NCBI GenBank assembly: GCA_038496445.1
Contig: JALMLS010000532.1
Span: forward strand, 1-32,730
DNA from: Trichosphaerium sp. ATCC 40318
Taxonomy: Eukaryota; Protista; Tubulinea
Direction of reading: 5' to 3'
DNA: 32,730 nucleotides
Numbering within the stretch: the stretch's first letter is position 1; each line of letters starts with the position of its first letter. This document shows, one piece after another, positions 4,090 through 30,999 of the stretch. The notes beneath the pieces are model-generated. The model was given only the letters and a program-made list of their open reading frames with translations. It was not told the origin of the DNA and ran no database searches. A program made the translations under genes and the position numbers.

Positions 4090-7000
4090 ATGTCATCCTT
4101 AGATAAAGCTTCTATATATACTTGCGGGCACTTTGCCGGCAAAAAAGGTTCACCTAATCGTGTTATTCGGTTAGTTAACTAATATTGTTTTGACAGTCGC
4201 GAAACTCGCTGATCCAGAGTGTATGGCTACCGGCGCGAGGTTTACAGCGGTTACAAGTACGATTGTTATTAAAACATACAGTAAGGGCCGTTAACGGACA
4301 AAACTAAGGTCACAGATCTCTATACGCATGGGGGTACCCATCAGAAAGAGCTCTAGGGCTTACAGCGAACTGGGTGAAAAAGAGCCAGCTGTAGTAGATG
4401 GAGTATCAGATGTAGCTCAATTAGACGCTGGAGTGAGTAAAATCATTGCACGCACACGTAAGTTCGATATTGGTGACATTATGTTAACTCCACTATGTGA
4501 AGGTACTGGTTACGTCTTCGTCTTAGAGCCAAATGAAGCAACCTTGAAAGCAACTCGCATTCAAAACTTTATTGGTACACCAGTGTATGTCAAAGGCTTT
4601 TTTTTGGTATATTTTGTTAAACTTGCCCTAGTATGGTGTCTTGTGGTGCTAGCCACTTTGCAATTGTAACACGTACGTTGGAACACTTTTTTTTTGGATT
4701 TTTGGAAAACTTGACTCTTTTTCTTGTTTTTTGGATTTTAGCGGTATTGTTAAGTTACTCTTTTTCAGAAAATGGATTGGTTTATACATGGGGTGAGGGT
4801 AGATATGGTAGACTTGGTCAAGGTGATGAAGTCTCTAGAAAATCACCAGTACAAGTCAAATCACTTAAATACGTTAAGTCCATATCTTGTGGCCGAGAGC
4901 ACACTCTTGCATTGTTGAGTACGACTGTTTTAATAGATTCATATTCTAAATATGTCTGTTAATAGGTAGTGGTGAAGTTCAAAGCTTTGGATTTGGTGGT
5001 AATGGAGCTCTTGGACACGGAGACAATTGCAACCAGCTTTTGCCAAAGAAAATTGTTGATATGCCTACAGCTGTTCAAATATCTGCTGGTGCTATTCATA
5101 GTTCAGCTGTATCAAAGGATAGTAATCTTTATACTTGGGGATCGTCCTTTCGCGGAGCGGTACGTTGTAGTGACTCAATTTGAGTATAAGTAAGCATGAC
5201 TAAAAGTTTGTTTAGTTAGGACAAGGTAAAAAAACAATGATTAAGATTCCAGTCAAAGTTGAAGGTACCTTAATATTTATTTTACCACCTATTAACCCTT
5301 ATATGTTCAAGGTATATCCAACGTATCGCAAGTATCATCTGGATACTATCACATGGCCTTTGTATCGGGTAAGTGATTGTTAATTTTAGTTCATTTGCTG
5401 ATTTTATTTCCAAAGAGTACGGAGAGTTATACACTTGTGGATCTGGTTACAGCGGCAAATTGTGTCATGAAGACGATAATGATTACAATGTTCCTACGCT
5501 TGTAAAATATATGGTGGGTAAACCAGCGTTTCAAGTATCATGTGGATTTCTGCACACATCAGTACTGCGTAAGTGGTGAACTTTGAAACGTCTTTGTCTC
5601 ATTTTTTTAATAAGTGAACATGATTGGACTTCTGAAGCGTATTGAGAAACAAGGAAATATCAGAGAGTATCTTGTTTGGTTAATCAGAAAAGGAGATTCA
5701 CATATAGATATGGCCAAGGCAGCTTTAACACATGTGTTATCCAGACCTATGAATCACTTGGGTACCTTTTTTTTAGTAAAAATCTTCTGTTTTATGTTTA
5801 ACATTCTTTAAGGTCTTGTTGTGTCAAAGAATCAAAATCTATTACACATATCGTCAATGGCTGGTAATAAAGCGTTTGTGAGTCATCTATTGGGTTTAAA
5901 GGAGGCTTCGGACTCTTCATTGAACCTCGACAAGCAAGGTACCTTGCAAAACAATTTTGTTTATTTTTATGCTCATATCTTATCTTGTAGATGATAAGGG
6001 AAATACTGCCTTGCATTTAGCTGTTGAATACGGAAAATTAGATATTGCAAAGATGCTTATTAAGGCTGGTACTGATGTTGAGATAATTAACAGAAACGGT
6101 GAAGACGCTTTTGATCTTGCAAGTAACTTACAAGTCCAACAAAACTTGAAAGGTAAAAAACTGTTTCACAGAAAATTGTTTTTTTTTTTGACACGTGTAT
6201 AGTTTTGGCTGGAAAAAAAGATGTGTTCATCAGTTATGGTGTATCTAGTAAAGCAACAGCTTTCTGTAGACGTATTAAGGATTCTCTTGAAAGCAATAAT
6301 ATCTTGTGTTGGCTTGATGAAAAGGAGCTGAGAGCGGGAGCCGAGTACGTCAAATGGTTGTGAACTTTTATCAAAGTTCATTGTGTCAATTGTTTTGGTA
6401 TGACGTTAATATTTGGTTTAGTTGGGTTAATGAGCTTAAGAAAGCAGTTGCCAAATGCCCTGTTATGGTGTTTGTTGTAACTAAAAAATCAGTTAAATCA
6501 GAGCACTGTAAGATGGAACTAGAGATTGCTCTCAAGGCGAAGAAACATATATTCCCTATTATTTTAGAAACAGCTGACTTATCATCTCAGCCATTCTCGG
6601 TAAGTTAAGAGTAAATTTTGAAGTGACAGAGTTCTTGATATTAACAAAAATCCAACAGAGTCTGCAAGATCGTCAATGGGTTGATTTTCAGAACGCTTCT
6701 TTTGACGTTCAGATAGCCAAGGTTGTCAAGGCTATTAGGACAAAGATACATAACAAGGGTGTCAGTAATTATAGTCTATCTTCCTCAGATACATCCGTTG
6801 TCGAAGAAAAACAAGATGTTTTGAAGAGGAAACCTTTTGGGACAAAAAGGAAGTATAATTTTTCTTCATCTTCATCATCGTTTTTCAAGTTCGGTGATAG
6901 CTTCCAGACAAAGAAAGTAGATGAAGCACCTGAAACACGTGCACCAGATCGTACGTTCATTGTTGTATTAAAGTACTTTTAATGGTTAACACGTGATCTA

Positions 7001-8416
7001 TAGACATTAAAGTAACTGTTGTTCATCAAATCTCTGAAGGGTTTTTCACAGCTCAGTTTTTAAGTGGTGTTCGTATTGCTACAGCTGAACTTGGCATAGA
7101 GCTTGTAGTATCAGATAGTCAGGTATTATAATTATCTATACTTATGTAACTCTCTAAAAATGAGAAAGGGACAAGTAACAAAGATGATTGGTCAGCTTGG
7201 TGAAGCCATCCAAACAAACTCAACAGCAATTATTATCAATCATGGGTATGCTCCTTTGTTGTTTCCTTCTGTGCTTCATGTTTCAAGATGTAAGATCTCG
7301 ACTGATCCTTTGTTTTTTAGGTTTTCTGTAGAGTTGTCACCTGTTATTGAACTTGCTCTTGAGCGCGGTATAAAGGTCATTGCGTTTGATTTTGGAATAC
7401 AAAATCCTGATGTTACTGAGATTGAACAAGATGACTTTATGCTATCACTAAAACTTTGTCGTGAATTGGCAAAGGATCATAGTGGTAGTGCTAATGTATT
7501 CTACTTTAAAAACAAACAAGGATTCGCACCTTTGGAGAAAAGAAACAAGATATGGCAATCAGTAAAATGGAGGTAAGAAATAAACAAAATTCACAGAATT
7601 AAACAGACGGCAACTTTTTAACGCTTTCTCAGGTTTCCTGGTCTCAACGAAATTGCAATTCCTAATACATTAGCTGATAATCCAGAACATCAAATCGCTG
7701 ATTTCTTACAAAACCATCCTGAAGGAAACGCTGTAAGAGAATGTCAAAACCTAACTTAAAGAAACTTAAACTAACCAATCCTTCAAGGTTTTGTCAATGT
7801 TTAACCTATGGACAAAAGGCGCATTCAAAGTACGCTTTATTAGAAATTCTATTATTTCAATATATTAAAAGAATACAGGCTATCACAGCAGCTGGTGTAG
7901 AGAGTAAATTCTCACTTTATTCTTGTGATATTGATGATGAAGATATCGAGTTAATGATTAGAAAGGGTAGCCCTTGGAAGGCTAGTATTGCTGCTAATCC
8001 AGCTTCAATCGGAAGATTATCTGTATTCGCTGCTTATGCCATGATAAGCGGTATAGCTATTGGGAAGTACATTCTATTTGAGCCAACACTTGTAACTCGT
8101 CAGTTTCTTGTTGAAAATAAGATTAGTGACTTTTCAAGCCTTGTAGACAAGCTCCCAGGTTTTGGTCAAGATATTCTACTTGTACGTAGTTCAAGAATCG
8201 ACAAATCTTCTTATGTTGAACAGCCGTTTTTGAACACGTGTTTTTTTCTTCTCAAGAATTTTTTTCGCTAAAGTTGGTTTGTTTTAGGAGCAGTACGATT
8301 TCATGCGTACAGTCAAGACCAAGAGTGAGAAAAGGAATGAAATGCGATCGAAGAAAGTAGATACAACATCAGCCAAAGCTGGACAGGTTGCCAAGAGGCG
8401 TAAGTTCAGATACTAA
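4090..8416 (+). CDS. RCC1 repeats - ankyrin repeats - TIR domain - type I periplasmic (sugar) binding protein fusion, multi-exon
   Basis: RCC1: VYTWGEGRYGRLGQGDE, ISCGREHTLAL, VSCGFLHT. Ankyrin: NQNLLHISSMAGN, GNTALHLAVEYGKLDIAKMLI. TIR: DVFISYG...CWLDEKELRAGADWVNELKKAVAKC...SVKSEHCKMELEIA...IFPIILE...RQWVDF. Solute-binding domain: AIIINHG, GIKVIAFD, EIEQDDF, GFAPLEKRNKIW, DIDDEDIELM..GSPWKASIAANPASIG. GT-AG introns join the domains in frame (e.g. 6153-6202, 6951-7003). An alternative last intron could extend the stop to about 8454. Confidence 0.88.
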
Positions 8417-8499: not shown

Positions 8500-9583
8500 T
8501 TACAAGATGGTACAAGTTCTTTGAGGTTCTTGTTCTATTTTTACAGGAGAAGTTACTTCTTTCTCTTGTTCTTCGTCTTGATCTGGGTATTGCCACTCAG
8601 ACTCTCTACCTGATCAAAACAATAAGTTTTTGGAGAATTTTAACAAAAGAAGTTTAAGAAGTTCTTTTAGTTTTGCCTCGTATCGGCTTGTTTCTCGGTA
8701 GTATAAGATTTCTTAGTAAAAAAAATAGAATACGAGAAATGAACAGATGCATACCAAGAATATTAGGCGCATCTCTAAACGTGAAATTGAATCGCAGTTG
8801 TTTGCATTCTTCTGGTAAAAAAGAAGGGGACGTATCACTATATACTTCATGTACGCAGTGTTTCAGCATTCTATTTGGACCTCCCCATACTATGATGTCT
8901 CCAGAGTCTAGTCTTATATCACATTCTTTATCATCAAGAACATATCCAAACCTACAAGAATTCCCAATACTACACTGTATCAGTATGATTTTAACCATGC
9001 TCAAAGCTAGCGCTAAGAACTAAGGTAGTGATATATCGCTGTGGGGAGCACATAGCGATTATTAACGGCGACGTTTATGCTCACCTTATTGAAATAATTG
9101 GATGATCATTGTCACCATCATTTGGGTCATCGTCACTATGCCATGACATGCCTACATCTCATCGTTATCTCATTGCTGCTTTGCAATTATACATACCTTG
9201 TGCATCTGCGTAATGGAGCAATAGGAGATGGGTTGGATTCATATTTGGCAAACTGTCATCAACCGTTTGACATTTGTCAATTATTTGACCACACAAAGTT
9301 GTAATGGTTTCTGGGTGTTCAAAGTTTCTTACTGCATCGTATATCCGGCCTCTAGACCAGCTCGCATTAAGTACACGTTTTCCTTTCCACGTTGTTGTCC
9401 AAAATCCGTTTTTAGTTCGTGCACCTGCCTTAGAGGCGTTAGTAGGTATTATCATGCGTTTAAGGGCACTTTAGCGGCGTATGTTGCTAGCCATGCTTGA
9501 GCGTCTTCTGAGAGTGTATTTTTTAGTAATACTACCCCAGGTGCTATTGATAATGCGCCAGTGTCGTCTAGAGTGAACTCCAT
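8500..9583 (-). CDS. AlkB-like 2OG-Fe(II) dioxygenase, multi-exon, with C-terminal CaaX (CTIL)
   Basis: Motifs GMSWHSD (HxD), PIISISIGNSCRF, LDSGDIIVWGG..RMLKHCV (distal His) and RFNFTFR. Predicted last exon GRESEWQY...PQRTCTIL*. Confidence 0.85.
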
Positions 9584-9780: not shown

Positions 9781-10591
9781 ATGGACGCGGATCCTATTAC
9801 GTATTTGTTTTTTATGTCTAAAACACTCTAATGGCACAACTAGGAGCGTTTTAGACTTACCACCAGAGATCCTTGCAAATATCCTAATTCATACAACAAA
9901 AGCACGCTTTCGTGCTTGCCAAACATGTCACAGGCTTGCCTCTATCGTTCATGATGTTATAGGATATGAAAGAGTTAAATTATGGAAACTTTCCCAAGCT
10001 GTAGCAATATCAAAGTATTGTGGTGTTTTGAGACACTCAAAGATAAGAGTAATTCACTCTTTAAATAGAGATACATCATATTATGATCCTATTGCAAGGC
10101 AATTAGTTGGTGTACATAGTATAGACTTAACTAATGCTGTTATATCTGTTAAAGGGATTAAAAGACTTGCTGGAGTTCATACAATATGTCTTAGAAGCGC
10201 CACTGTAACGGATGAAGGTGTTGAGGCTTTGGCTGGAGTTCATACTATTGATCTAGCTTATTGTAAAACAATAACAGACAAAAGCATCAGAGCATTGAGC
10301 GGCGTTCATACCATTAACCTTGATAGTACCAATGTAACAGATGAAGGCATTAAGGCTCTTAAGGGCGTCCATAGTATTTTCCTTGAGTTTACTCGTGTAA
10401 CAGATGAAGGCATAAAGGTCCTTGCTGGCGTTCATACTATTAACCTCCGTTACACTTCTATTACAGATGAAGGCATAAAATCTCTTGTGGGTGTTAGTAA
10501 GATTTATCTTGAAGGTTCTATGGTAACTAAACAAGGCTTTAAAATACTAGAGGGCAGTTTTAGTGATTTGACATTATTGTATCAATCTTGA
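9781..10591 (+). CDS. F-box + leucine-rich repeat protein
   Basis: Exon 1 is 9781-9800 and the intron is 9801-9843. F-box VLDLPPEILANIL..RACQTCHRL is followed by about seven 22-23 aa repeats of the type LAGVHTIDL..T.VTDEGIKAL. Confidence 0.88.
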
Positions 10592-10821: not shown

Positions 10822-11562
10822 TTAATCTAAATTGTAGAAGTATTCTTCAGGGATATAATCATCAACTTTTTCGTCAGATGAGTAAACCATTTCATAATCA
10901 GATGAGTCAGGCACGTTATTGAAACCGTTGTTGAAATCGACGTGGATAGTACCATCCGCATTAGTTGTGACCATCGGTTGTTCTTGAGGGTCGCTGTTGT
11001 CGGTGGTATTTAAGCAAGATTCAAAACGCGGCATCTTAAGTGTAGGAACAGGAGAAGGCGCATTTCTGTTTACTGGACACTTAATACTTGTTAGCGACTC
11101 ATTATCTCCAAAATCGACGTCTGGATCGACGTCCATTGAAACATCATCACCATAACGTAACGCAGTATGATCTATCATGTCATGGCTGATTGGCGAAGTA
11201 CATCCACTATAATTTGGCGAAGTTGGGTGATACGAAGGCGAACTCTCTTGAAAATACGGTCTCGGAGCTTTGAGAAGGCCCAGCAGATAAGTACGGCGTG
11301 CGATCGAAGATTGGCGCGTTTGGAGCGCTTGAGCGATAACAATCATGCGTGGTACCGTCGTACAAAAAGCTACGATGGTTTCGGCTTCACAACGTCTTAA
11401 AGCGAGGTCTTGGACCATTTGCGCAAGAAGCTCGTGTATAGCTTTCATTGCGTTGGCGCTGAAACTTCCAGGTGTAAGGTCAATGGCCGGAATGGGTAAG
11501 GACGAATCGTTTGAAAGATCATCAGTGATCGTAGATACTTCAGTTCTCCAGAGGTGCTCCAT
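10822..11562 (-). CDS. Accessory ORF (246 aa) of the retrotransposon, in the env position, function unknown
   Basis: Intact intronless ORF between pol and the PPT. Helical N-terminal half, SSPSYHPTSPNYSGCTSP motif, acidic tail. No signal peptide or transmembrane segment seen. Confidence 0.8.
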   Translation of the reverse strand: MEHLWRTEVSTITDDLSNDSSLPIPAIDLTPGSFSANAMKAIHELLAQMVQDLALRRCEAETIVAFCTTVPRMIVIAQALQTRQSSIARRTYLLGLLKAPRPYFQESSPSYHPTSPNYSGCTSPISHDMIDHTALRYGDDVSMDVDPDVDFGDNESLTSIKCPVNRNAPSPVPTLKMPRFESCLNTTDNSDPQEQPMVTTNADGTIHVDFNNGFNNVPDSSDYEMVYSSDEKVDDYIPEEYFYNLD

Positions 11563-11710: not shown

Positions 11711-14700
11711 TTATTTTGCTGAAAGCTCCATCCTAATTTTCATTTGGGAAGTGTTCTTATCTTGCGCCCATCTTTTAGCAATAGTGATAAGAGCTTGTTT
11801 GCTGTTTGCCGTTCTAACTTCTTTTCGGAGTTTCTTTCTTTGGTTAGTATTTGCAATGTACCCTTCAATAATTGAATACATTGGTGGCTTGTAGTTAGTT
11901 GGTTCGTTCGTTTTAGTGCCTTCCATTTTGGTAAGTAACCGTTGTAGTTCTATTTGAAATGTATCTGCTACATTCGCTGTTCCTGCGGTTCTAGGTGACC
12001 TACGAATTCGTCGTGGTGGAGTAATTGGTACTTCTGGTGTGAAATAATCTTCTGTGTTATTATCGTTCAGTTCTATTGTCCCTTGTGATATGTTCTTTTT
12101 TTCGCGCGAAACTTCATCCGAATTTTTAACAGATATAACCGGAGCGTTTTGTAATTTATATCTTCGCCAATTTTCATCCTCTTCTTCACTGATATCATCT
12201 TCGCTACTTACTTTGGAGCTTGTTTCGCTGTTTGAGATGCTAATTTCTCCACTAACACTCTCGCTTTGACTTAATTCTCCACTGCTGTTTGTAGCGTCAT
12301 TTTCTCCGTTATCAAGGTTGACGTCAATATCGTCTACACCTCTTGGTAATGGTGGCGCTTTTGTCGTTTGTTGTTGCCCAGTATTTCTAAATTCAATATC
12401 ATAATCATCATCATCTGAGTCTGATTCTTCTGAATTCTTTGGTAGCGGCTTTGTAATAGGTCTATTTAATGTTGTACTGACTTCAAACGGTGGGTACATA
12501 GTACTTTGTTCTATGTTTCTGTCTTCTCGTTCATTATATTTTTTTAAGAATTTTATGCTAACTACATTGTGCATCCGACTCTGGCTTTTGAAGTTAAGCT
12601 TGTATGCATTCGTGTTAATACGTTTTAACACCACATATGGGCCTTTCCATCGGTGTTGTAATTTCTTCGTTAGGCCCGGTGTGGGGTTGTACTGCCACAT
12701 CAGAACTTTGTCACCAACATTGAATACTGTTGTATTTGTATGTGAATCGTGATTCACTTTTGCTTTCTCTGCTGCTTCTAGCATTTTAGTTCTTGCTAAT
12801 TGATGTGATTTTTGTAGGGCCTCAACCATTCGTGATCTGTATAACTTTAACGTTGTTGGTTGTTCATGTATTACATTTAAATCCAGCGGTCTTCTTGGAT
12901 GTCGTCCAAACATTAAAAAGAATGGTGTTTCTCCTGTCGCTACATGATGTGTGGTACGATATGCCTGTAAGCATTGTGGTAAGTATTCATCCCAGTCTGT
13001 TTGAAACTCTTGATCACAGAATATGCCTAACATTTCTGCAAGAGTATGATTAAATCGCTCAACTTGTCCATCGGTTTGAGGATGGTATGAGCTTGTGGAA
13101 AGCTTGCGAATCTTGAACAGTTTTAATAAATCCGTCATTAATTCACTTAAGAATTGTGACCCTCGATCTGTAAGTAACTGTTCCGGATAGCCGAATCTTG
13201 CAATGACTCGATCAAATAGTAATTTTGCAATTACTTCTGTTGTTGGGTTATAACACGCAAATGCTTCAACCCATTTCGTGAAGTAATCACAGAAAACAAC
13301 TATACTGTTATTTCCCAATCTTGTTGTTTTCATTGGTCCGACAATATCAATTGCAAGTCGTTGCCAAGGAAAACTGGCAATCATTGGCATTAATTTACCT
13401 TGTTGTTTTCCTCGCTTGATCTTTTTCGTTTGGCAAAGTTTGCAACTGTCAATATACTTCTTAATTTGACTGTAAAATCCTGGCCAATAATAGTTGGACC
13501 TAATTGAATTAAAGGTTTTGAAGAATCCTAGATGACCATTGTTGTCGTGATGGCTCATCAGTACTTCTGATATTAATGATTTCGGTATCACAATCTGTGA
13601 TACTTCTGCTTTGACTTTTGGTACTGTTGGTAACCATATGTGGTTGAGAATTCCATCATCGTTTATCCACATGAATCTTGATAGTGCAGCTACATTACGT
13701 GCTGTTGTTTGGTCTTTAGGTAATGTTTTGGTTTTGAGATATGTTGTGATATCTCTACAAAACTGGTCATGGCTTTGACACACTTTGAGTCTTTCGATGC
13801 TGAATCCAGTTTGTTCTTCATTTGTTGTATCTTTGATGAATGGTGGACGCGATAATGCGTCAGCGTTGCCATGTAACTTTTCCGCCCGTTGTTCGATTGT
13901 GAAATCGTATTCTTGAAGTGCAAAGATCCATCTTGCGTATTTTTGACACACGTGCTTAGTGGTTAACAGCCACTTTAGTGATTCGTGGTCTGTTATTATT
14001 CTTACTTTGTTGCTGGCAATATATGGTCTATATCGTTCAGCTGCTTTAATTACGGCTAAGCACTCTTTTGCTGTTGTTGAATAATTTCGTTCAGCTTTGT
14101 TCAAACTCTTACTGAAATAGGATATGACTGACTCAATGTCGTTCTTTCTTTGAGCTAGTACTGCACCTATGCCTACGTTTGAGGCGTCTGTGTACAGTAT
14201 GAATGGAAGTTCAAAATCCGGATATCCCAATATAGGGGCATTGCATAAGGCTTCTTTTAATTTGTTTATGCTATGATCTTGCTTTTGTGTCCATTTAAAC
14301 TGCATGTCTGATTTCAGCAATTCATATAGTGGATATGCGATTTCTGTATATTTGTCTACAAACGAGCGATAATAGTTTGAGATCCCCAAGAATGACCTTA
14401 GGTCTGGTACATTCGTAGGTGGTGTCATATTCACAATTGCCTCTATTTTTGTTTTATCAGGTTTAACGCCATGTTGAGTTACTACATGACCCAGATATTT
14501 AACTTCTGGTACACAAAATTTGCATTTCTTTGCGTTGAGTGAGTGCGAGTATTTGTCAAATCGTTTGAATACTAATGCTAGTGCAAGCAAGTGTTGGTTG
14601 AATGTCTTAGTGAATATGATGATGTCGTCAATATAAACTAATGCATACTTCCATGTCAACCCATTAAGAAGTACTTCCATATATCTCTGGAACGTGGCGG

Positions 14701-17122
14701 GTGCATTGACTAATCCAAAAGGCATCCTGTTAAATTCGAATAATCCAAATTTTGTAGTGAATGCTGTCTTTTGTTTATCTTGTTCTGCAACCTCTATATG
14801 CCAATACCCACTAGGTTGGTCTAATGTGGTAAAATACACGGCTCCTGCAACAGAGTCTAGTGCTTCCTCTACTCGTGGTATTGGGTAAGAATCTTTCTTA
14901 GTTAGACCATTTAATTTTCGGTAGTCCACACAGAAACGAAGTGTTCCGTCGCTTTTTGGGGCTATTACCACTGGAAATGCCCATGGTGAATTGCTTTCAC
15001 GTATTATTCCGTCTTCCAGCATGGTGTTGATCCGGTTCCATAGGTAGTCTGCTTCAGATGGTGATACTCGGTATGGTTGGTTTTTGACTGGACGTGCATC
15101 TCCTGTTACAATGTTGTGTGCTGGCATTTTGGACCTGGGGGGGCGCTTCGTGTTTTTAATAAACAGGTGACGGTATCTTGCGAGAAATGCCATTAGGAGC
15201 AGCTTTTGTTCGTCATTGATATTACTGTTCGAGAAGTCAAACATATCTCTGATCCCTTCAATATCACTGCTAAGTGTTTTCATGTCTTTTAAATCATCAA
15301 TTATTGACTTTGCTTCTTTGAGTTCTGTTGATCTGATAGCGTTAATTCTATTTGACTGCATCCAACTTCCAGTTGCAATCTTTAAACCCTTTGAAACTCC
15401 CATTGTCTCATTTGAGAAGTTCGCTACCTTAATACCAGTGTGTCCTCCGTGTACCATTACTATTGCCCGTTCGACTGCTGTTCCGTGTATATTACGGAAC
15501 CTTTTGTCTGGTTCGATCATCATTACTCCTGATGAGGTGAGCGAGTGTGTTCTGACTGGCACAAATGAGTATGATCTTGGTGGTAATTTTACTTCATGTG
15601 TAACAAATAGTGTTTGGTCTTGTTTGTTTGTTTGACCACGAATGCATGGCGAATTGATGTTTGGGTTGTTATTGAAGATCAGTTGATAATTGGGGGCATC
15701 AATCGTTATTTTCATGGATAGAATAGTATCCATACCAATGAGTGGTTTGTCAAAGTCATCTACTACGATAAATCTAATCCAACATGGTTTTGATAGTCCG
15801 ATTGTAACTTGAAACATTATCGTTCCCATTATTTTAAGTGGTTCATGTCCAGCTCCTTGCAATGTTGCTTTGGTTGGTTGCAATTTTGTGATCCCCATTT
15901 GTATAATATCCTTGTATGGGAATATGCTTCGTACTGCTCCTGAATCTACAATGGTTTCCATAGTGACTCTTCCTGTTTTGTTTGCAAAGGTGGCTAATGT
16001 GGATAGCACCGATGTTGCCTGACTATTTGCTGACTTGATCATATAAACTGGATAGTTACCATTTTCTTCTTCAAACTCATCATTGTAATCATCATATATA
16101 TTGGGTTCGTTGTCATAGTATTGATCCTCTCCCTCGTTTGTAATCATTCGTATGTATTGTCCTTGTTGTTGGTTACGGGATTGTTGTCCCTGAAATCGTT
16201 GGTTTGATCGGTTATTGTTATTATTGAATCTGCGGCGAAATCCATTGCCTCGTCTTGGTCGTTGTTGATAACGGTTATACTGGGGGTTATAACGAAATGG
16301 TCCTTGTTGTCTGTTGTTAAATTGTCTTCGTCTTTGTTGGTTAGGGCAATTGCGAGCTATGTGTCCGGTTCCATTGCAGTTATAACATCTGATGTTTGGA
16401 TTGTTCGGTTGTTGTACTACATTAATAGTGCTTGGTACCGGTGTCGGTGTTGGAGCTTGTACCGTGGCCTTTATAGTACTCATGACACTGACATGAAACA
16501 TAGCTACCTCAGCGGCCTCTTGGGCTGATGCTGGTCTTTGTAAAAGCACATATTGTGCCAATTCTGAGGGCATAAGCTTTAAGCAAAATGCATCTCTGAG
16601 TTGTGTTGGATCGTGAATGCGTGCTTCTCGTGCTGCAATATGGAATCGTCCGCTAAAACTACCAATATCCTCTCCCAACTGCATTTTTAATGATGCAAAC
16701 TCATGCTTTTTCAAAACTGCATTTGTTTTTCTGCCATAACGCTCTAACAGGTTTTTAACAATCTGGGTCCAAGCCATACTCGAGATGCTTGAACCGTCAG
16801 CAGGCTTGATACGGTCGAGTGCTTCACCAGTGATGTGGTTACGCAAAACAATTTCGTATTGGGTAATTTCCCAGTTACTGAAAGTACTTATGGACTTGAT
16901 CTTATCAAGCCAATCCTCAACGCTGATTTTGTCTACTAATCTGTCACCTGTGAAGGCGCGTAGAGAACCTTTAGGTATTGATGGGTATTTTGGTTGGACA
17001 TAAACAGGAAGTTCATTCGCTAAAATCGGATTTCCGTCCTCTCCTACTGCTGCAACGCGTGCTTTAAAAACCGGCTTATACACCTCGATGGCGTCGTTGA
17101 TATCCACTAACTGTTCTAACAT
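11711..17122 (-). CDS. gag-pol: Single-ORF Gag-Pol polyprotein (1803 aa)
   Basis: Zinc knuckle CYNCNGTGHIARNC, protease IVDSGA, RT (LRFCVDYRKLN, MPFGLVNAPATFQ, YIDD), RNase H (YTDAS), integrase (HHCC, IDIVGP, TDRGSQF, ERFN) and a GPY module. Confidence 0.97.
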   Translation of the reverse strand: MLEQLVDINDAIEVYKPVFKARVAAVGEDGNPILANELPVYVQPKYPSIPKGSLRAFTGDRLVDKISVEDWLDKIKSISTFSNWEITQYEIVLRNHITGEALDRIKPADGSSISSMAWTQIVKNLLERYGRKTNAVLKKHEFASLKMQLGEDIGSFSGRFHIAAREARIHDPTQLRDAFCLKLMPSELAQYVLLQRPASAQEAAEVAMFHVSVMSTIKATVQAPTPTPVPSTINVVQQPNNPNIRCYNCNGTGHIARNCPNQQRRRQFNNRQQGPFRYNPQYNRYQQRPRRGNGFRRRFNNNNNRSNQRFQGQQSRNQQQGQYIRMITNEGEDQYYDNEPNIYDDYNDEFEEENGNYPVYMIKSANSQATSVLSTLATFANKTGRVTMETIVDSGAVRSIFPYKDIIQMGITKLQPTKATLQGAGHEPLKIMGTIMFQVTIGLSKPCWIRFIVVDDFDKPLIGMDTILSMKITIDAPNYQLIFNNNPNINSPCIRGQTNKQDQTLFVTHEVKLPPRSYSFVPVRTHSLTSSGVMMIEPDKRFRNIHGTAVERAIVMVHGGHTGIKVANFSNETMGVSKGLKIATGSWMQSNRINAIRSTELKEAKSIIDDLKDMKTLSSDIEGIRDMFDFSNSNINDEQKLLLMAFLARYRHLFIKNTKRPPRSKMPAHNIVTGDARPVKNQPYRVSPSEADYLWNRINTMLEDGIIRESNSPWAFPVVIAPKSDGTLRFCVDYRKLNGLTKKDSYPIPRVEEALDSVAGAVYFTTLDQPSGYWHIEVAEQDKQKTAFTTKFGLFEFNRMPFGLVNAPATFQRYMEVLLNGLTWKYALVYIDDIIIFTKTFNQHLLALALVFKRFDKYSHSLNAKKCKFCVPEVKYLGHVVTQHGVKPDKTKIEAIVNMTPPTNVPDLRSFLGISNYYRSFVDKYTEIAYPLYELLKSDMQFKWTQKQDHSINKLKEALCNAPILGYPDFELPFILYTDASNVGIGAVLAQRKNDIESVISYFSKSLNKAERNYSTTAKECLAVIKAAERYRPYIASNKVRIITDHESLKWLLTTKHVCQKYARWIFALQEYDFTIEQRAEKLHGNADALSRPPFIKDTTNEEQTGFSIERLKVCQSHDQFCRDITTYLKTKTLPKDQTTARNVAALSRFMWINDDGILNHIWLPTVPKVKAEVSQIVIPKSLISEVLMSHHDNNGHLGFFKTFNSIRSNYYWPGFYSQIKKYIDSCKLCQTKKIKRGKQQGKLMPMIASFPWQRLAIDIVGPMKTTRLGNNSIVVFCDYFTKWVEAFACYNPTTEVIAKLLFDRVIARFGYPEQLLTDRGSQFLSELMTDLLKLFKIRKLSTSSYHPQTDGQVERFNHTLAEMLGIFCDQEFQTDWDEYLPQCLQAYRTTHHVATGETPFFLMFGRHPRRPLDLNVIHEQPTTLKLYRSRMVEALQKSHQLARTKMLEAAEKAKVNHDSHTNTTVFNVGDKVLMWQYNPTPGLTKKLQHRWKGPYVVLKRINTNAYKLNFKSQSRMHNVVSIKFLKKYNEREDRNIEQSTMYPPFEVSTTLNRPITKPLPKNSEESDSDDDDYDIEFRNTGQQQTTKAPPLPRGVDDIDVNLDNGENDATNSSGELSQSESVSGEISISNSETSSKVSSEDDISEEEDENWRRYKLQNAPVISVKNSDEVSREKKNISQGTIELNDNNTEDYFTPEVPITPPRRIRRSPRTAGTANVADTFQIELQRLLTKMEGTKTNEPTNYKPPMYSIIEGYIANTNQRKKLRKEVRTANSKQALITIAKRWAQDKNTSQMKIRMELSAK

Positions 17123-30009: not shown

Positions 30010-30999
30010 CTATGTGGTGAGACTCTTTGGATACAATTCTCTTGGTTCGTTTATAGGATCAGGCCATGATAATACAGTATCATCTGGTCGTGGAAACATG
30101 TAACCGCAGTTTAAACATGCCATTACTGTGAACTTTGAGATGAATTTCCGAAATGCGCCTTCATCGTTGTGAACTGCTGATAAATCCAATGCTTTGTCGT
30201 TACACTTAAAGTATTCTATAGCACCGTATGTGAGCAAGTCGTGACTACCTTGAGTTGATAACCATTTACAAACATCAACATGATAACCTTCCACTGCGTT
30301 TTCCATAACTGTATTAACAAATTCATGATGTGCCTCTTCGTTACTTACGTCCACGTGATTAACAAGTAATTTTACGATCTCTAAATGACCATTTCCTCCG
30401 GCAAATTTAGCTGCTAGACAATCAGATCCCATTACATTAGCGCCTTGTTTTAAAAGAAAGGAAACAATTTGTACATGTCCAAATCTGGCTGCATACTTCA
30501 AAGCGTAATCATCGTCTGCGTGAACATCTGCTCCAATAAGGTGTAGCCATTTAACAGTGTTAAAGTGTCCGTTTTGAGCAGCTACGCCTATAGCATATCC
30601 TCCTTTCGCATTTGGATCAGCACCACGCTTAAAGCACCATTGAGCTGCTATCAAGTGTCCATTCTCACATGCACAGCGAAAGGCGTAATCATGGTAGTAT
30701 CTAACGTTCGCTCCATTTTCTACAAGCGTTTGCATAAACTCAACGTTTCCAGTACGCGACGATTCTCCCAGTGCGTTGTCCTTTTCAGATTGAGGCGTAT
30801 CAGCGTGTTTTGCGTACCAATTTACTATTTTTTTTGCTTTTTTCTGTATTGCGTACACCAGGATAGCGCTGTACTTTGCTCCAGGTGCGTATTGGCCTAG
30901 AAAGTCTATTTGGTTTGTTTCAATGACTTCTTTAAGAAGTTTAAGGTCATCTTGTCTAATGGCTTCTCCCGCTTGTTTCATTTTCAAACTTTGCTCCAT
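30010..30999 (-). CDS. Intronless ankyrin-repeat protein
   Basis: 329-aa ORF with 30-aa ankyrin repeats such as GADVHADDDYALKYAARFGHVQIVSFL, and a CxxC near the C-terminus. Confidence 0.9.
   Translation of the reverse strand: MEQSLKMKQAGEAIRQDDLKLLKEVIETNQIDFLGQYAPGAKYSAILVYAIQKKAKKIVNWYAKHADTPQSEKDNALGESSRTGNVEFMQTLVENGANVRYYHDYAFRCACENGHLIAAQWCFKRGADPNAKGGYAIGVAAQNGHFNTVKWLHLIGADVHADDDYALKYAARFGHVQIVSFLLKQGANVMGSDCLAAKFAGGNGHLEIVKLLVNHVDVSNEEAHHEFVNTVMENAVEGYHVDVCKWLSTQGSHDLLTYGAIEYFKCNDKALDLSAVHNDEGAFRKFISKFTVMACLNCGYMFPRPDDTVLSWPDPINEPRELYPKSLTT

Follow-up and report, generated by a model that had tools for sequence, protein, structure and literature searches.

A Trichosphaerium gene joining RCC1, ankyrin and TIR modules to a bacterial 5-methylthioribose-type binding domain: a candidate ligand-gated TIR protein

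We analyzed a stretch of 32,730 nucleotides (the window) from the amoeba Trichosphaerium sp. ATCC 40318 (contig JALMLS010000532.1, positions 1 to 32,730 of the forward strand, assembly GCA_038496445.1) and identified a gene whose product carries RCC1-like, ankyrin-repeat, and TIR modules followed by a sugar-binding domain. The binding domain is of bacterial origin, is two-lobed and structurally intact, and belongs to the family of 5-methylthioribose (MTR) binding proteins. All 4 modules are encoded by a single nuclear gene, rich in introns, whose product is soluble and cytosolic. We propose that this single fused gene encodes a ligand-gated TIR, in which the bacterial MTR-family domain would act as a sensor controlling a TIR NADase or cyclic ADP-ribose (cADPR) output, and we place this proposal at about even chances.

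The window is eukaryotic, as judged by its GC content of 35-40% and by coding segments that switch frame each 50-300 nt. Automatic exon chaining by dynamic programming had given wrong short introns, and the gene model was curated by hand. It comprises 21 exons and 20 canonical GT-AG introns of 45-106 nt each, with donors of the types GTAAGT, GTACGT, and GTACC and YAG acceptors, and gives a stop-free open reading frame (ORF) of 974 codons from 4328 to a TAA stop at 8414-8416; the predicted full product is ~1,020 residues (Table 1). No N-terminal hydrophobic stretch, signal peptide, or membrane segment was identified in the product, and the highest 19-residue Kyte-Doolittle mean (1.72) is located in a helix of the binding fold. 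The original prediction, made from the sequence alone, had placed 4 modules in one frame in a protein with no signal peptide or transmembrane segment, and both points held, the first by the open frame across the 20 introns and by the same module order in 2 relatives described below. The binding domain begins with exon 7004-7122, whose start coincides with the first beta-strand of the fold and which contains no ATG; only a canonical phase-1 intron (6951-7003) separates it from the TIR-linker exon, and a separate binding-domain gene is therefore very unlikely. Were this intron retained, a stop would follow 10 codons on; the product would then consist of RCC1-ANK-TIR and lack the binding domain, and it may represent a regulated isoform. 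No tandem paralogue of the gene was found in the window by tblastn with the relatives.

To find proteins related to the binding domain, the 101-residue exon 7879-8181 was used as a query against 1.84 billion representative proteins. Among the hits were 2 long proteins, P0013 (1,043 aa) and P0016 (1,044 aa), in which the matching segment lies close to the C-terminus; both have WD40_RLD/RCC1, Ank_2, TIR_2, and Peripla_BP_4 above the Pfam cut-offs and in the module order of the window gene. P0016 is the complete ORF of a Trinity transcript from the testate amoeba Arcella intermedia (EukProt), so the 4 modules lie on one mRNA in this species. P0013 is encoded on a 4.2-kb environmental contig by an ORF of 1,043 codons without interruption and had been automatically named as a sugar-transport binding protein. 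Both are collinear with the window exons from 4576 to 8187 (tblastn), and alignment of the 3 proteins over their whole length gives 36-38% identity, each module having conserved blocks. Because 2 distant full-length relatives share the 4-module order, the fusion is real and old and predates the divergence of the 3 lineages to their present identity. In P0013 and P0016, a basic tail rich in Pro and Gln is followed by a common C-terminal LG(I/L)PF(F/L) motif; the window protein ends earlier and lacks this motif. Further fused members were not found in protein searches, which were not exhaustive, with the TIR-binding-domain part of P0013, the ANK-TIR part of P0016, and full-length sequence (swamped by RCC1 matches), and none of the 80 loci from a metagenome scan with RCC1 peptide patterns had TIR, ankyrin, or binding-domain sequence.

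The presence of a bacterial sugar-binding domain, as originally proposed, was confirmed by profile, fold, and phylogeny. The spliced window domain matched the family profile with 336 bits (E 1e-102) over profile positions 25-351, that is, at full length; the Pfam match of Peripla_BP_4 to the single exon 7322-7573 was weak (E 2e-4), and P0013 and P0016 reached 79 bits against a cut-off of 35. Fold prediction was made on the P0013 domain as a proxy for the window protein. Its AlphaFold model had a predicted local distance difference test (pLDDT) score of 93.4 and matched solved sugar-binding proteins with Z of 30-45, the best being 4RY8 (Z 44.8, root-mean-square deviation 1.6 A over 315 residues, 38% identity), whose entry title identifies it as TLET_1677, the 5-methylthioribose transporter binding protein of Thermotoga lettingae. 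The next matches, at Z of ~31, were to ribose-binding proteins. The bacterial relative P0003 also matched PDB 4RY8, with E 3.5e-138.

The nearest free-standing relatives in the search with exon 7879-8181 were bacterial, with 40-48% identity on that exon and an Anaerolineales protein in one cluster. A scan of bacterial genomes gave 79 loci, the best belonging to Chloroflexota and Thermotogota at 39-44% identity, and at 36 of the 79 the mtnK gene was located no more than 5 kb away. In Pseudothermotoga and Chloroflexus the gene order was binding protein, ATP-binding cassette (ABC) ATPase, permease, and MTR kinase (S-methyl-5-thioribose kinase), and an MTR-1-phosphate isomerase was additionally carried by the Pseudothermotoga operon. 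All of these matches lie well above the respective NCBIfam cut-offs, the kinases scoring 475-483 bits with the MTRK model (cut-off 275). In many Chloroflexota, the binding protein of the MTR operon is a tandem duplication of 714-817 residues with 2 complete binding domains (loci L081, L082, L086-L088, L090, L105, and L109-L111). Maximum-likelihood trees placed the 3 eukaryotic domains in one clade (SH-aLRT 99 and 97) nested in the bacterial family, with mtnK-linked rows flanking the eukaryotic branch on both sides; these trees have long branches and do not single out a donor phylum. The features of an ABC-transporter binding protein, namely a signal peptide or lipobox and permease and ATPase partners, were absent, since the domain is internal and its neighbors are eukaryotic. 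Rather than contamination, the domain represents a transfer that has been integrated and domesticated, because 7 introns lie in it or at its edge and the surrounding window holds ordinary eukaryotic neighbors and a retrotransposon. A bacterial fusion of TIR with this binding domain, as a joint source of both modules, was seen neither among 101 representative hits nor among the 79 genome loci, a survey that was not exhaustive.

The eukaryotic copies keep much of what the bacterial family conserves. At positions with at least 90% conservation in the closest bacterial clade, they keep 66-73%, as compared with 61-73% in bacterial binding proteins of neighboring clades, and they keep 45-50 of the 73 positions (62-68%) that are invariant across non-redundant mtnK-linked proteins. 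The motifs kept include NHG, FD, QDD, PLxKR, VD, SPW, and GR, which by the known topology of ribose-binding-type proteins would lie on cleft-facing loops. From the fold match, operon content, and tree placement, the ligand class can probably be narrowed to 5-methylthioribose-like pentoses. Further, 8 bacterial proteins with a binding domain of the same clade (P0005, P0007-P0009, P0012, P0014, P0015, and P0017) are cytosolic fusions with no signal peptide or membrane segment and with GAF, PAS, HisKA/HATPase, REC, or STAS following the binding domain. The bacterial loci L097, L099, and L102 likewise have the MTR-family domain fused to signaling domains without signal peptide or membrane segment. 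These bacterial fusions are candidate cytosolic sensors of MTR or 5-deoxyribose. Use of this clade as a cytosolic sensor input thus appears to be already established in bacteria, and the sensor idea for the amoebal protein gains weight because bacteria employ the same clade, free of signal peptide and membrane segment, as a signaling input.

In the TIR region, Pfam TIR_2 was identified on 6205-6351 and 6423-6599 (E 1.6e-5 and 3.8e-9), the exon 6423-6599 passing the TIR_2 cut-off (37.5 bits vs 28), and P0013 and P0016 scored 78.6-79.8 bits. The Glu noted originally within HCKMEL, at the site in helix C that is catalytic in TIR NADases, is present in all 3 proteins (HCKMEL, HCQSEL, and NCAYEL), and via P0013 it aligns with its catalytic counterparts in the plant Roq1 TIR and in SARM1. 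The similarity of the TIR to Roq1 and SARM1 is weak (E 7e-5 to 1e-3, with SARM1 at ~1e-3), and its closest profile matches, also weak, are bacterial defense TIRs, both short-Argonaute-associated (SPARTA-type) and ThsB. Protist TIRs, including one of Dictyostelium purpureum, have been reported to produce cADPR in a Glu-dependent manner, with the RCC1 domain appearing in a figure among the TIR architectures tested (bioRxiv 10.64898/2026.04.20.719644). The TIR is tethered to the binding domain by a linker of ~65-90 residues, the equivalent of which in P0013 contains a disordered stretch of ~45 residues (pLDDT 30-48) in an AlphaFold model of TIR, linker, and binding domain.

In the N-terminal half, Pfam RCC1 matched the exons 4768-4917, 4965-5159, and 5412-5567 with E 2e-18, 3e-12, and 3e-10 (41-67 bits against a cut-off of 21.7), WD40_RLD scored 213-304 bits in P0013 and P0016, and Ank or Ank_4 matched exon 5990-6151 at E of about 1e-10 to 8e-10. 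Neither an ARM sensor nor tandem SAM domains had a Pfam match in the window exons or in P0013 and P0016.

We infer ligand control of the TIR by analogy with the gating of SARM1, TIR-STING, and TIR-SAVED. The binding domain would be the input of the protein and would still close around a small pentose resembling ribose, with MTR and 5-deoxyribose as the most likely ligands, and its preference may be altered in the window copy. Closure on the ligand would change the association of the tethered TIR domains and lead to TIR self-assembly, which in turn would result in NAD+ cleavage or the production of a cADPR-type signal, and the RCC1-ankyrin part may serve as a scaffold, a targeting module, or a second input. 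The earlier suggestion that a cytosolic sugar sensor controls TIR activity is partly supported: the cytosolic setting and the intact bacterial domain are borne out, the sensor role gains weight from the bacterial precedent, and ligand control and NADase activity stay conditional. Bacterial 5'-methylthioadenosine (MTA)/5'-deoxyadenosine nucleosidase makes MTR and 5-deoxyribose, which are excreted by, for example, E. coli K-12, the excreters being E. coli strains without the dihydroxyacetone phosphate (DHAP) shunt (PMC10986504). Since E. coli excretes both compounds, they are plausible marks of bacterial prey. A more specific idea, which we regard as speculative and rather unlikely, is that the protein recognizes this bacterial waste as a cytosolic pattern-recognition receptor and switches on TIR signaling when MTR or 5-deoxyribose is bound.

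Several observations weigh against a ligand-gated TIR. None of the 3 proteins has the Trp of WxxxE; His, His, and Asn stand in its place, and in the window protein the residue 4 positions upstream of the Glu is His. In AbTir this Trp takes part in substrate binding and influences cADPR formation and product choice (PMC10641520), so that activity or product of the TIR may differ where it is missing. The window copy, alone among the 3, differs at 3 family-conserved positions of the cleft region (WD to FN and TD to AN), and its ligand may therefore have shifted and perhaps is not MTR. The AlphaFold model of P0013 shows TIR and binding domain as 2 well-folded domains (pTM, the predicted TM-score, 0.64) with no contact confidently predicted between them, no dedicated oligomerization domain such as SAM, NB-ARC, or STING was identified in the protein, and the ORF from ATG 4090 is broken by a one-base frame discrepancy. 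The changed Trp, together with the weak similarity to the known NADases Roq1 and SARM1, would also fit a protein in which the binding domain senses a ligand and the TIR is a noncatalytic adaptor, acting by TIR-TIR or TIR-partner contacts with no cleavage of NAD+. Animal Toll-like receptor adaptors classically signal by such contacts. The Glu, however, is strictly kept despite the low overall identity of the 3 proteins, the closest profile matches are to SPARTA-type and ThsB defense TIRs, and diverse protist TIRs are Glu-dependent cADPR producers (bioRxiv 10.64898/2026.04.20.719644); we consider a purely adaptor role improbable. About one-third of the family-invariant residues have changed in the binding domain, including the whole conserved loop TAADTQ...EA, as well as WD and TD in the window copy, and this raises the alternative that sensing of a sugar from outside or from bacteria has been lost and that the domain is either a ligand-free structural or dimerization module or a receptor for the ribose-containing product of the TIR itself in a feedback or relay. 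TIR products are indeed ribose derivatives, but the pocket of the closest solved relative fits a single pentose and is far smaller than ADP-ribose or cADPR would need, and FD, QDD, PLxKR, VD, SPW, and GR survive in 3 lineages at the rate of neighboring-clade bacterial proteins (61-73%). Such a loss or change of role is thus doubtful.

The frame discrepancy bears on whether the window copy is a working gene. The 3 N-terminal exons are good RCC1 blade sequence and are read from ATG 4090 in frame 0, and all downstream coding, in 21 exons, is in frame 2, the one-base difference in register being located at or next to an A5 run (4377-4381). We enumerated all GT/GC-AG pairs able to join both frames; the sole bridging option was a 32-nt GT-AG intron, rejected as shorter than the other introns of the gene and as deleting the conserved WG-x4-GxLG blade spacing. 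Reading through, with an X at the discrepancy, gives exact register with the other RCC1 blades and aligns with the N-terminus of P0013, and ATG 4328 is in frame with the downstream exons as a possible alternative start. The simplest reading is a one-base difference, either an assembly error at the homopolymer or a real, recent frameshift. The stop reached from ATG 4090 and the change of frame after it would also be expected if the locus were a decaying pseudogene or a mis-joined model, with a working fused gene only in the relatives. Against this, the other 974 codons are open across their 21 exons with canonical splice sites throughout, the discrepancy lies at a homopolymer where read-through restores the exact blade register, and translation could start at ATG 4328, and we hold a dead or mis-joined locus to be very unlikely.

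Table 1. Features of the RCC1-ANK-TIR-binding-domain gene (positions in the window)
Feature	Position	Strand	Basis or remark
Whole gene, RCC1-ANK-TIR-binding domain, ~24 exons	4090..8416	+	Hand model, N-terminal exons, and collinear relatives
Three N-terminal exons, first RCC1 blades, frame 0	4090..4394 (4090-4147, 4197-4256, 4309-)	+	Run into TAG 4392-4394
RCC1-like beta-propeller exons, continuous frame	4328..5568	+	Pfam RCC1
Helical and ankyrin-repeat region, three exons	5615..6152	+	Pfam Ank on 5990-6151; Ank_2 in relatives
TIR_2 domain (exons 6203-6344, 6422-6599, start of 6659-6950)	6203..6751	+	Pfam TIR_2, PF13676
Conserved Glu codon within HCKMEL	6516..6518	+	Catalytic position of TIR NADases
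Ser/Lys-rich low-complexity linker from TIR to binding domain	6752..6950	+	Translation; P0013 equivalent predicted disordered
TIR-linker/binding-domain intron, phase 1	6951..7003	+	53 nt, GTACGT donor, TATAG acceptor
Type I sugar-binding domain (Peripla_BP_4, CUT2-type), seven exons	7004..8320	+	Profile, Pfam, P0013 fold
Binding-domain exons	7004-7122, 7169-7245, 7321-7572, 7633-7732, 7788-7829, 7879-8181, 8288-	+	Hand model
Basic C-terminal tail and stop	8321..8416	+	Translation; tail varies among the three proteins

Among the neighbors in the window, a 2-oxoglutarate (2OG)-Fe(II) oxygenase exon (8654-9004, minus strand; AlkB-like, PF13532, E 6e-12) is convergent with the TIR gene, the 3' ends of the 2 genes lying within ~250 nt. 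An intact Ty3/gypsy-type retrotransposon polyprotein of 1,803 codons, with zinc knuckle, reverse transcriptase, RNase H, and integrase, was identified at 11711-17122 (minus strand), and an ORF without a Pfam match lies on the same strand at 10822-11562. Two repeat proteins were also encoded, an LRR_6-repeat ORF at 10028-10591 (plus strand) and a 329-codon ankyrin-repeat ORF at 30010-30999 (minus strand).

TIR proteins of plants, animals, and bacteria respond to very different inputs, and to our knowledge the inputs of protist TIRs are unknown. The putative input module here is recognizable as a receptor for small molecules, one of its close relatives has a solved structure, and a candidate ligand can be named, so that what activates an amoebal TIR can be asked directly by binding and enzyme assays. 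The gene also clearly illustrates the transfer of a component of bacterial transport that has gained introns and was apparently rewired as a cytosolic sensor, a reuse of the binding domain that bacteria have made too, in one-component and kinase-type sensors. If the receptor idea were true, MTR or 5-deoxyribose would mark live or freshly digested prey for a bacterium-eating amoeba, and a eukaryotic immune sensor would have been made from a stolen bacterial nutrient receptor fused to TIR.

The original prediction knew of no described protein with the RCC1-ANK-TIR-binding-domain architecture, and we likewise found no paper on it, nor any in which a periplasmic-binding-type domain is combined with TIR; such a fusion also goes unmentioned in a 2026 survey of TIRs from eukaryotes and amoebae (PMC13142454). 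Among amoebozoan cytosolic TIR proteins, Dictyostelium TirA is a soluble TIR protein required for growth on bacteria (PMC5758549), and RCC1 repeats are assigned to TirE, which has them together with 2 TIRs, and not to TirA (PMC13142454). The original prediction had placed RCC1 with TIR in TirA. TirE, like the window protein, joins RCC1 and TIR, but neither a binding domain nor an ankyrin block is reported for TirA or TirE, which were compared by description only. Among the relatives of the binding domain, 4RY8 (TLET_1677) and the mtnK-operon proteins of Chloroflexota, Thermotogota, and Bacillota have the same fold and family at 38-44% identity, with the common motifs NHG, FD, EIEQDD, PLxKR, VD, and SPW. 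In bacteria they are secreted or carry a lipid anchor and have a permease and an ATPase as partners, whereas the window domain has no signal peptide, is interrupted by introns, and forms the C-terminal module of a TIR protein. The bacterial GAF, PAS, histidine kinase, and STAS sensors use the same domain clade as an intracellular input without signal peptide or membrane segment, but with the binding domain N-terminal and an output of phosphorelay or anti-sigma type, in contrast to the C-terminal position and TIR of the window protein.

The functional parallels lie with TIR proteins of other folds. SARM1 (ARM-SAM-TIR) is a cytosolic TIR gated by a small-metabolite-binding domain in the same chain. 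It resembles the window protein in combining a TIR with the catalytic Glu and a small-molecule domain in one cytosolic chain, a likeness that is functional only: SARM1 has an ARM sensor and a SAM octamer ring, whereas the window protein has a C-terminal sensor of periplasmic-binding type, no SAM, and no Trp in WxxxE. In bacterial TIR-STING and TIR-SAVED, the small-molecule receptor is C-terminal, and its binding of the ligand makes the TIRs assemble and act as NADases. With their TIR and C-terminal small-molecule receptor, they are the closest functional analogy to the window protein, although their ligands are cyclic oligonucleotides from the cell's own defense and their receptor folds are unrelated to that of the window domain.

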